Shown in pieces: positions 53,526 through 58,132 of a stretch of 64,000 nt of DNA (position 1 is the stretch's first letter; each line of letters opens with the position of its first letter). Below the pieces are notes generated by a model. The model was not told the origin of the DNA. It saw only the letters and a program-made list of their open reading frames with translations, and did no database searches. Origin of the DNA: Fonticula alba ATCC 38817 (lineage: Eukaryota > Protista > Nucleariida); assembly GCA_000388065.2 (NCBI GenBank), contig KB932201.1. One strand, given 5' to 3'. Position numbers and translations under genes: made by a program.

Positions 53526-56500
53526 ATGAGTATCAACCTCCACGGTGCTGTCATCAGCCCGGGCACGGAGCATGCGCACCTCCAGCAGCAGCGGACCCCC
53601 TCCCCACCGGTGGATGGGTCCCCCTCGAGTGACAGCCTTTCACAGGGGTCGGCGTCTGGGTCGGATGCTCCGCGCCTGTCGACCTCCCTCCCGCCGGGCG
53701 CCCAGCTGACTGGGTCTGCCTCGACGTCCTCGGGCCAGCCGCCGGCGCAGTATGCCCATGCCGGGACGCCGCGGACCGCCGGCTTCCAAGTCAGCGAGGA
53801 GCCTCCATCCCAAGGGCCCGGGGGCGAATCTGTTGAGTACTTCTGTGAGAAGCTCCTCGCAGCAGGGTCAACCTCCAGCCTGTCGACTGATCCGTATGTT
53901 GCGGGCGAGGGGGCCGATGGGACGCATGAGATCTACCTTCCCTACCAGGTACACGGCCATGTGCCCCGGCCCGTCCCGAGCGCACACACGCACGCACGCA
54001 CGCACGCACGCACACACACGCACACACACATTTATACCTGTGAACTTTCACGCACACTTCTGCTGACGTTGCTGGCTCATGGCCTCTACCTTTCTCTCGT
54101 CCACTTGATTTCCCGGCCCTCCGATTGCCTCCTTTCCCGCCCTCGCCCCCCCCCCCTCCCCCCCCCTTATTGACTCCCTCTCCGCCTGTGACAATTCCGG
54201 CACCGTCTCCAGCACGAGGATGTTTCCCTGCTGGGCTTGGACCTTGGCGGGTCGTTGTCCAAGGTGGTGTATTTCAGCCGGCGCCGGAATCCCAATCAAC
54301 AGCCCGCCGTCGCCCCGGCGCTGCTGCCGGGAGGCGACTACCTGCCGGCCGGAGGGCGCTTGCATTTTGAGCGCTTCGCCACGCATGACATCCACCGCTT
54401 GGTGCAGTTCCTCCGGCCATTTGTGGCGGCCTGTCGCCGGGCTGCCGGACTTCCCCCCACCAGGGATCCCTCCTCCCAGGGCGACGGAGACATCATTGAG
54501 CTCCGGGCCACCGGCGGCGGGGCCCACAAGTTTAGCCAGCTTTTCTTGGCCGAACTCGGGGTCCGGCTTGTTGCCTGTGATGAGATGCTGGCCCTCATTC
54601 GGGGATTGAACTTCCTCCTCCGCGAGGTGCCGTGCGAGGTGTTTTCCCTGCGCGAGCGGGAGGCCGGCGCCGCGGCCGCCTCCGGGGCCGTGGAGGACCT
54701 GGGCTCGGACAGCGAGGAAGAGGACAACATCGACGCCCCGCCGCAAGTGCGCTACCACCCGGCTCGCGAACATCCGGCCACCATGTACCCCTATCTGCTG
54801 GTGAACATTGGCTCGGGCGTGTCATTGCTGCTGGTCACCGGTCCCGACTCCTTCCAGCGTGTGGGCGGCACCAGTCTTGGTGGTGGCACCCTCTGGGGGC
54901 TGCTCAGCCTGCTGACCGACTGTGTGGATTTCGATTCGATGCTCTCCCTGAGCATGCGCGGGGACAACCGGTATGCCTGCTTCTCTCGTCCTGCCCTTCG
55001 GGTGGATTTCCCTTGGCCTCCCTGTGGTCATCCTGCTGCCATCGTCCTGGGCCATGGGCTCTCTCACACACTTGGCTGACCTGCTGCGTCCTGTGCGGCC
55101 CCCGTCCCCCCTGCACCTCCCCCGCACCTCCCCTCTGCTTCGGCGGGCCTTGTCCTCCTTTGTCCGGGATAGCAATGTGGACATGCTTGTCGGGGATATC
55201 TATGGTGCGGATTACACGGCCGTCGGGCTGAAAGCCACAACCATCGCCTCGTCCTTTGGCAAGGTCTGGCAGCCAGACTCGCCGGGAGCCCCGGCCAGCT
55301 GCACCCACTCCGGGTCGGCTGCCCATGCTGGCCCTGGGGGCACATTCGGCGAGGATGCCGGCCATGAGGCGGGGGACGCCTCGGCGGTGGGTCCCTGCTC
55401 GCATGCGTGCGCTCGGCGCCGGCGCTTTTCGCCGGCGGATCTGGCCAAGTCGGCCCTGCTGATGGTGGCCAACAACATCGGCCAGATTGCCTACCTGACC
55501 GCACAGGCGCACAACATCAACACCATCTACTTCGGGGGGTCCTTCCTGCGTGGACATGCGGCCACTTTGCGCTCGATCTCCAGTGCCGTGGCCTATTGGT
55601 CTGGCGGGCAGGTGGGAGCGCGTTTCCTCCGGCACGATGGGTATCTGGGCGCCCTGGGGGCCTTTTTGGAGGCGGCGACCGCGGCCGACGCGGTCGAGGC
55701 CCAGGCCTTGGCGCTGGGGGGCTTGCACCAGGGCAGCTCCGGCGGAGTGTCCGGCTTCCAGGAGAACTTTTCCCCGCGCTCTGGCGGGGGCCCGGCCGTG
55801 GCGCCGGCCGCCCCGCCGACGGCCATCCGCCTGCCCCATCGCCTGCCGGCGCTCGGTGTCTTGGAGCGTGCGGCCCAGCCGCTGGTGTCCTTCCCGCTGC
55901 TGCGCAAGCGGTCTTCCTATCGGGCGGCGACGCTGGATTTGGCCGCCATCACCCCTGCGGCGGATATCCTCCGGCGGCACTGGCTGGCGGTGTTCCGGCG
56001 TCTGGTGGAGCGCGTCTCGCGCCAGACCCTGCAGGCACTGACCAACAGCCGGCTGGCAGCGGCCAATGGCGCCGGGCTGACGGCGACCCAGCAGCGCTTG
56101 GCTTCGCAATTGCCTCGGCTGCCGGTCATGGACTTGGCCTTGGTGCAAGGGCGCTGCGATGCCTTTGAGCGGTCTTTCACGTATCTTCTGGACCGGCTGG
56201 AAGCGCAGCCGGCCGCCTACGGCTGGCTAAGCATCGCAAGCTTGCTCAATCTCCAGGAGCAGGTGGGTTCGGTCTTGGCCAGTGCAGGCCCTCTTTTCTT
56301 GTTTGTCCCCAGCTCTGTGCCTGACCATTCCGGCCGACTAATCACATCTGCATGCCGGAATTGTCCCTCGCTCTTGGCTGCTTGCTCGCCGTTCGGCTGT
56401 GATCCGTGTTTGCATGGCGCAGTGTCTGCATGAGTTTGCCGCGGCCGACCCGCTGATCAATCTGAAGCTCCATCGCAATTTGCGCGCCCTGTCGCTTTTG

Positions 56501-58132
56501 CCCCAGCACATTGACCCGAAGGGCGGGCCGCCGACCCCGGCGGCCGAGTGTGCCGAATGGCTGGCCGCCGGATTGGCTGCCGCCAGCAATGTCCCGGGCA
56601 TCGGCGAAACCGAGGCCCTGGGTTTGGTCCGTGCTCACCAGCCGGCCCTGCTGGCTTGGTATGGGTGGCTGGCCTCCGGGCTGTGCCGGTTGCTTGTTTC
56701 GGATCGGGCATCCGGCTCGGTGGAACTGTCGGCCATCTATGACTTGGCCGACGATTGGACCAGCGAAACGGCCGGCGACGCCTTTTCCGCCAGCGTCCAG
56801 CGCCTTCGGGAGCAGCTGATGTTCTGCGGCACCGATGCGGAAGACCCTCCGGCGAGTGCCGATGAGCAAGTGTCTGCCCCTTTGCGATTGGCGTCGCTGG
56901 CTGGCCGGTCGCTGTTGCTCGGTCTGTCTACCGGTCGCTGGAAGCGCGTGATCATCTGCGTCAATAATGCCGGAGCATGTGCGGTCCTTGGAGCCTTGCC
57001 CTTCGCACGCCTACTCCTGTCCTATGATGGGCCGGTGCTTGGGGCGACGTCCGCCTCCGGGGCTTCGACTGATGTCCCAGCCCCGGTGGTGTACCTGGCC
57101 GCCAACTCGTATCCCGCGTCCGACGACATCACCTGCCATGAGCTTCAATCTCTGTTGCAGCTGGCCACCGAGGATGATCCCGATCGCCCGGTCGACCCGG
57201 TTCTCCGGGGGGCATTCCACTCGGAGTACGTTGTCGCGCATGATTTGGTTCTTTTTTCTTTCTCCGGCTGGTGTTTCCGTTCCATGGCGCCCAGGTTCCA
57301 GCCCTCGGGGTGGAGGGGCTGGGGATCTCCCGTGCTTTGCCGCCGCTGCCGCTGCCGTGGCCGCTGCCGTTGCCGTTTCTGCCGCTGTCTATACGACTGC
57401 CTCTCACATACCTCACCCTCTGTGTCCTCCTCTATGTCCTCCCCCCCCCCCCTCCCACCTCGCTATTTACTTCGGAAAAAAAAACACAGGCGCCTTCAGG
57501 TCATCCCAACCGGCACCGGCGGGACCTGCCTCAGTCTGGCTCGGGTCTCAAGTCTCCTCAGTGAAATCGCCACGCCGGGATTCGTGCCGGAGTCTGGGTC
57601 CACCACTCCGCGGGGCCCCCCCACGCCCCGGGCACCGGCGGCCGTCAGCTCAACAGCGAATGCCACGGCGGCATCCACGCGCGCTGACTCCCAGCCTGAC
57701 GTCGGCCCGATGCCGCCAGCCCCGCCGATCACCCTGACCGGGCCATCGCTGGCCTCGGCCACCCCACCACGGGAGACCTCGGACACGCTTCTCATCTTGC
57801 TCGGTGCTGGCCGGGCTTTGCACACCAATCTCCTGGCTAGCTTCAATTGCGATGTGCTAAAGGTGGCCGTGGTGAAGGACGCCTCGATTGCGGTGTCCTG
57901 CAGTCTGTACGCCGATGCGTGGTTCCGCTCGAATGGCGGGCCAGTCGGTGCGTCTTCGGCCACAACCGGGCCGGCTGTCGGCAATGGCGGCGAGCAGCCC
58001 GGCAACTGGGCCTTCCAAGTGGGCGATCCGTTTGTGGCCTTCGAGGACTTCGGCCTGATCGACCGCCTGGAGCCGAATCTCCAGCACCGGGCGACGCTGG
58101 TGAATCAGGCTGCTGCCAATGAAATCATGTAG
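53526..58132 (+). CDS. PANK4: Type II pantothenate kinase fused to a C-terminal DUF89/ARMT1-like domain (PANK4/plant PANK2 architecture)
   Basis: Kinase: LDLGGSLSKVVY, ATGGGAHKF, DEM, YPYLLVNIGSGVS, RVGGTSLGGGT, VDMLVGDIYG, ASSFGK, NNIGQIA, FLRHDGYLGALGAF. C-domain: LGALPFARLLL, AANSYPASDDIT, TGTGGTCLSLARV, GRALHTN, LKVAVVKD. Confidence 0.92.

Follow-up and report, generated by a model that had tools for sequence, protein, structure and literature searches.

We analysed a 64,000-nucleotide stretch of contig KB932201.1 of Fonticula alba ATCC 38817 (the window), in which a gene at 53526-58132 on the plus strand encodes a fusion of pantothenate kinase (PanK) with a DUF89 domain. The window is eukaryotic, with 60-76% GC and short GT-AG introns. 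Reading frames and GT-AG splice sites predict five exons and a product of ~1238 aa, in which an N-terminal type II PanK is followed in the same reading frame by a C-terminal DUF89 domain of subfamily II. Our data support the principal proposal of an initial annotation made from the DNA letters alone: the gene appears to be a natural PanK-DUF89 fusion that joins an active kinase, the sole PanK of the genome, to a DUF89 pseudophosphatase. In the searchable literature we found no description of this gene and no paper naming both Fonticula and pantothenate kinase. The predicted layout is as follows.

53526-53948, plus strand: exon 1, with the ATG and a 141-aa Ser/Pro-rich N-terminal extension in which Pfam finds no domain; donor GTACAC at 53949
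54213-54970, plus strand: exon 2, the N-terminal two thirds of PanK (Fumble), with DLGGSLSK, the Glu of DEM, VNIGSGVS and RVGGTSLGGGT
55173-56262, plus strand: exon 3, the C-terminal third of PanK (to ~55671), a linker and the N-terminal helical part of DUF89 (from ~55740)
56423-57225, plus strand: exon 4, the DUF89 cap region (mostly unalignable), KLHRN, the core strand with NNAGAC, and SDDIT
57226-57489, plus strand: intron 4, GTACGT...CACAG, 264 nt (a multiple of three), in frame and stop-free
57490-58132, plus strand: exon 5, DUF89 core strands, LGAGRALHTN (57800-57829), the CDVLKVAVVKD block, a C-terminal extension and TAG

The gene model was compared with a profile built from 34 full-length PanK-DUF89 fusions. 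The profile was collinear with the exons (exon 2, profile positions 29-240; exon 3, 242-507; exon 4, 508-669; exon 5, 682-748), and the aligned blocks were 508-539 and 609-669 in exon 4 and 682-707 and 712-748 in exon 5. Exon 3 spans both domains without a stop, and its profile match ends exactly at the exon boundary. Because the exon junctions fall on consecutive profile positions, the predicted gene model is strongly supported. Searches used single exons or the stop-free read-through 56399-58132 (exon 4, intron 4 and exon 5). Since intron 4 is in frame and free of stops, its retention would insert 88 residues and would not truncate the protein; the intron region had no counterpart in homologues, and its predicted local distance difference test score (pLDDT) was below 50 in an AlphaFold2 (AF2) model of the read-through. 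The initial annotation had placed the whole PANK4-type fusion at 56400-58132. All of the PanK motifs that it named are present, but they lie upstream of that interval, which holds exons 4 and 5 only.

The protein also carries insertions. We observed a 33-aa loop insertion in the PanK part of exon 3 and an insertion of ~70 aa, rich in Pro, Ser, Thr and Ala, in exon 5 (about 57569-57784). Gly/Ala/Ser-rich insertions lie within kinase loops at 55279-55410; together with the exon 1 extension, these are low-complexity expansions typical of this GC-rich genome.

Conservation of the kinase half

PanK catalyses the first reaction of coenzyme A (CoA) synthesis. PANK4-type fusions are now viewed as a brake on this pathway, and human PANK4 is the textbook pseudokinase bearing an active phosphatase. 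The Fonticula kinase half shows strong conservation. Pfam Fumble (PF03630) matched exon 2 with 191.5 bits (profile 2-207) and exon 3 with 163.5 bits (profile 209-334; cutoff 28.5). Invariant PanK columns were retained at 59 of 60 positions, and columns conserved at ≥90% were retained at 97 of 105; the other eight carry conservative differences at a distance from the catalytic residues. DLGGSLSK, ACDEM, VNIGSGVS, RVGGTSLGGGT and RHDGYLG are all present in exons 2 and 3 (54213-55671), and exon 2 is alignable to the structures of yeast Cab1 and human PANK1-3. In the alignment, ACDEM and QRVGGTSLGGGT pair with EDEME and ERISGTSLGGGT.

The equivalents of PanK3 Glu138 (in DEM) and Arg207 (in (Q/E)R(V/I)xGTSLGGGT) are both retained. 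Amniote PANK4 has lost this Glu and this Arg, and in the pseudokinase human PANK4 they are replaced (Glu138Val and Arg207Trp; PMC8861153).

Genome-wide six-frame searches of the 31.3 Mb genome returned this locus as the only Fumble match, and neither a type I nor a type III PanK was detected; a count of PanK paralogs, which the initial annotation had called for, ends at one. This differs from amniotes, which have three other PanKs beside PANK4. Together, the strong conservation and the single copy make it very likely that the kinase half is an active enzyme, as had been proposed. This half is under normal constraint and most likely provides all pantothenate phosphorylation for CoA synthesis, and probably that of pantetheine as well.

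Motif states of the DUF89 half

Pfam DUF89 (PF01937) matched exon 4 with 13.1 bits, below the cutoff of 25, and gave no match on exon 5; Pfam returned nothing on the read-through open reading frame (ORF) 56399-58132. Because PF01937 remained below threshold, homology was established through phmmer against the PDB and through the fusion profile. Exons 4 and 5 aligned to At2g17340 (1XFI; E = 2e-6 and 7e-4, respectively), pairing VIICVNNAGACAVLGALPFARLLL with VIFVDNSGADIILGILPFARELL, NSYPASDDITCHEL with NELPSINDITCTEL, and LLGAGRALHTN with VEGMGRGIETN. At2g17340 (1XFI/2Q40) is the best sequence and fold match of the C-terminal half; unlike the Fonticula domain, it is a stand-alone DUF89 protein of subfamily II with canonical DNSGAD, NDIT and EGMGR. 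On these alignments, the C-terminal half is a true homologue of DUF89. The states of the family motifs, with the family form given for comparison, are as follows.

56963-56980, plus strand: NNAGAC of CVNNAGAC, in the place of family DNxGxD
56963-56965, plus strand: nucleophile position, AAT (Asn), where human PANK4 has D623 and S. pombe Duf89 has D252
56966-56968, plus strand: second Asn of NNAGAC
56978-56980, plus strand: Cys replacing the last Asp of DNxGxD
57119-57133, plus strand: SDDIT; the second metal-ligand Asp (PANK4 D659) is kept at 57125-57127, and the preceding Asn has become Asp at 57122-57124
56464-56478, plus strand: KLHRN, in the place of family KxxEN, with Glu changed to Arg
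57800-57814, plus strand: LGAGR, in the place of family EGMGR

The initial annotation had read CVNNAGAC, LGAGR and KLHRN in these states and at these coordinates, and we observed the same. The domain also shows a Ser-to-Ala replacement. Downstream of the LGAGRALHTN block, K737 and K742 are kept; the E and M positions of the family block vary naturally among homologues that keep DN. Over the whole domain, the gene retains 24 of 37 invariant columns and, among those conserved at ≥90%, 39 of 74. Roughly 44% of the DUF89 profile columns, in the cap region and a loop (profile 540-608 and 670-711), could not be aligned; since hmmalign aligned neither the cap in exon 4 nor the first part of exon 5, the count of lost columns is somewhat overestimated. 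Global MAFFT scattered parts of the exon fragments, and only motif blocks were used from that alignment.

We assessed how far these motifs vary among homologues. DN was present in 250 of 250 DUF89 homologues, fused and stand-alone, and the last D of DNxGxD in 249 of 250. ND(I/V/M/L/F)T was present in all 96 representatives in which the motif could be located. Substitutions of the NNAGAC type are far outside this family variation. In contrast, ~20% of the nearest homologues have V, I, H, L or D instead of the Glu of EGMGR, and GAGR was found twice, in homologues that keep DN. Because this position varies in proteins with DN, LGAGR is weakly diagnostic: it is weak evidence of phosphatase loss, and NNAGAC is the more decisive sign. 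The weight that had been placed on the EGMGR change was therefore too great. As a broader observation, this Glu is not a universal catalytic residue of DUF89 subfamily II, as it is replaced in the DN-keeping proteins of Nuclearia (HGMGR) and of an environmental sequence (P0001).

A second eukaryotic PanK-DUF89 fusion, at L003:5908-8248 (ENA ERZ25073694 ctg113832; P0005 and ORF 7556-8248), also departs from the family motifs. It keeps DN and has LDDMT, EGTCQ for EGMGR (with the Arg lost) and LANLGG for AGNMFDWG. In this protein the same DUF89 domain shows a partial degeneration of another kind.

Mutant studies bear on the change at the nucleophile. Crystallography and mutagenesis of S. pombe Duf89 and Duf8901 gave the Asp two roles, as a metal ligand and as the nucleophile on which an aspartyl-phosphate forms, and the isosteric D252N (Duf89) and D248N (Duf8901) substitutions abolish activity (PMC9062747). 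In human PANK4, a 4'-phosphopantetheine phosphatase, D623A and D659A abolish phosphatase activity (PMC9352595). The Fonticula domain resembles the S. pombe mutants in carrying Asn at the nucleophile and metal-ligand position with other ligands present; those mutants are laboratory-made and belong to stand-alone proteins of subfamily III, whereas this is a natural subfamily II domain fused to a PanK. The equivalents of Duf8901 Asp195, Asp363 and Lys401 were assigned by motif resemblance, as a PDB profile search missed the subfamily III structures.

With the nucleophile Asp, the second acidic residue, the Glu of KxxEN and most of the cap lost, phosphatase catalysis would be impossible. The motif states and the mutant precedents thus agree with the proposal of a dead phosphatase, and the DUF89 half is probably inactive as an enzyme. 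Having lost the Asp that attacks the substrate phosphate and binds metal, it would have no 4'-phosphopantetheine or damage-control phosphatase role. A PF01937 search across the 31.3 Mb genome gave no match and hence no other DUF89 gene, ARMT1-like genes included, which would leave the genome seemingly without an active DUF89 enzyme. The degenerate tail is the only DUF89 remnant detectable there.

One residue speaks against a dead phosphatase: an Asn-to-Asp change, possibly compensating, adjoins the second metal ligand and gives DDIT. The enzyme could still be active with a rearranged active site, for example if this new Asp, which arose beside a retained metal-binding Asp, replaced the lost one. 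Asn is also able to ligate metal, and the R, K and HTN of the phosphate-binding region are still present. However, in two DUF89 enzymes the isosteric Asp-to-Asn change is enough by itself to abolish activity, since the carboxylate serves as the covalent nucleophile, and here the other acidic residue of DNxGxD and the Glu of KxxEN are lost too. The DD variant also occurs in the L003 fusion, which keeps DN, so DD is not tied to loss of the nucleophile. We regard a rearranged, active phosphatase as very unlikely.

A sequencing or assembly error at the Asn codon, or a strain-specific defective allele at the locus, is less probable still. GAT to AAT needs a single base change, but it is accompanied by changes at other invariant sites (Asp to Cys, which needs two bases; Ser to Ala; Asn to Asp; Glu to Arg) and by a diverged cap. 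So many independent changes at invariant sites point to deep divergence and not to a single error.

Lineage of the fusion and fate of the DUF89 tail

The best named match of the gene was a PanK-DUF89 transcript of Nuclearia, and chytrid fusions were also among the best matches. In a quick-search tree of exon 3 only, which carried a compositional bias warning, the gene grouped with Nuclearia and P0001 (Shimodaira-Hasegawa-like approximate likelihood ratio test, 96), with a terminal branch of 1.76 compared to 0.86 and 0.67. The Nuclearia fusion shares 59% identity in the kinase half and the junction motif CLHE(F/Y)xxADPL, which is typical of the lineage.

Fusions of this type occur widely among chytrids, Glomeromycota, Mucoromycota-grade fungi, animals and plants. 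This distribution indicates that the fusion is ancestral and that the Fonticula gene is the local orthologue; the fusion would have been inherited from a common ancestor with Nuclearia and early-diverging fungi. The orthologous fusions of Nuclearia, chytrids and Glomeromycota, which carry the annotation 'pantothenate kinase 4' or 'fumble-domain-containing protein', and plant PANK2 keep DNxGxD, ND(I/V)T and GMGR in proteins of about 730-900 aa. The Fonticula protein differs from them in its length, its insertions, NNAGAC and the unalignable cap.

We did not find a close relative of the degenerate DUF89 half among 1.84 billion representatives searched with HMMER and the read-through query (best match, 58.9 bits; none resembled the gene itself), and all motifs that could be located among the matches were canonical DN. 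A word search with the DUF89 half of Nuclearia did not return the window's own annotated protein. Nuclearia and P0001 both keep DN, NDIT and GMGR. Because the relatives all keep DN, the degeneration arose on the branch leading to Fonticula.

The gene is therefore lineage-specific in its motif states and, as had been proposed, a mirror image of human PANK4. Both proteins combine PanK with DUF89 subfamily II, are collinear over the whole profile, and have one domain that is, or appears to be, a pseudoenzyme. Human PANK4 has a dead kinase and an active phosphatase (D623 and D659 are essential), whereas the Fonticula protein has intact kinase residues and carries Asn at the D623 equivalent.

We also weighed whether the DUF89 tail has been kept or is decaying. 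Identity to relatives is 39% in the DUF89 blocks that can be aligned, a level matched by Nuclearia compared to chytrids or animals. The invariant residues that survive (N, G, LG, PF, N, P, D, T, E, G-G-R-A-H-T-N and two Lys) are grouped at what was the active site, and both introns in the DUF89 half remain correctly phased. Modelled in AF2 without the exon 3 part, exon 4, intron 4 and exon 5 reached a predicted template modelling (TM) score of 0.69 with a core pLDDT >90 and low confidence for intron 4 and the insertions. The top Foldseek match of this alignment-driven model was 1XFI (E = 3.9e-7, TM-score 0.58 by target), followed by other DUF89 structures. The conserved core blocks, the open frame and splice sites, and the modelled DUF89 fold make a non-catalytic role likely.

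Other observations pull the opposite way. AF2 is guided by the family alignment, so the argument for a retained fold is partly circular. The unalignable columns and the long low-complexity insertions also fit slow neutral decay, and an open frame is weak evidence in a genome of 65-68% GC. The tail could on this basis be a functionless remnant, decaying neutrally and tolerated as an attachment to an essential kinase; the sub-threshold Pfam score, the unalignable cap, the low pLDDT of the long insertions and the long terminal branch are all consistent with this. Against it, ~560 codons and two introns are intact in the correct phases, the core blocks are as similar to relatives as those of functional orthologues, and the surviving invariant positions include the neighbourhood of the old active site. 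Loss through a premature stop downstream of the kinase domain would have been easy, yet it did not happen. We consider pure decay unlikely; a retained non-catalytic role, whether structural or in binding a phosphorylated intermediate in a 'substrate-trap' state, is likely the better account.

Overall, we hold with good confidence that the gene is the sole type II PanK of Fonticula within an ancestral fusion, with a live kinase and a DUF89 domain that has lost its nucleophile and is kept as a pseudoenzyme module. The DUF89 domain would persist folded, in frame and spliced, with most phosphate- and metal-contacting positions intact, and would serve as a structural module or as a binder of a phosphorylated CoA intermediate. 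The sequence data show the domain architecture, the states of the motifs, their restriction to this lineage and the single copy directly; an active kinase, an inactive phosphatase and a remaining non-catalytic role, including the ligand-sensing or regulatory one suggested in the initial annotation, are inferred from them. This arrangement, opposite to that of human PANK4 and seemingly without a back-up PanK or DUF89 gene, suggests that either half of the fusion can turn non-catalytic. A natural 'substrate-trap' DUF89 could be used to probe cross-talk between the domains, such as product sensing or dimer stabilisation.

CoA pathway genes and a possible salvage route

Genome-wide, exon-wise six-frame searches gave zero candidates for PPCS (PF04127), PPCDC (PF02441), coaBC (TIGR00521) and the HFCD signature PxMNxxMW. 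The same type of search picks up exon-sized matches down to ~20 bits for CoaE and cytidylyltransferase-like genes. One possible reading is that Fonticula lacks PPCS and PPCDC and makes CoA by salvage only, from bacterial prey, with its sole PanK acting as a pantetheine kinase and the pseudophosphatase acting as a product sensor that regulates the kinase. The kinase product would then be 4'-phosphopantetheine, the preferred substrate of the ancestral phosphatase, so the fusion would create a futile cycle and selection would kill the phosphatase chemistry. What remains as the sensor would be the 'trap' pocket, in which Asn stands for Asp and R, K, HTN and the second Asp persist. If the absence of PPCS and PPCDC is true, then in a free-living bacterivore loss of the phosphatase would be linked to CoA made by salvage only. 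As six-frame searching exon by exon is unable to prove absence, this idea is speculative, and we judge it improbable.

Two further genes were observed in these searches. A stand-alone dephospho-CoA kinase (DPCK) is present at G000:C8:180038-180579 (L004:1516-3033), and a small cytidylyltransferase-like gene is present on the minus strand at L005:1525-1845.

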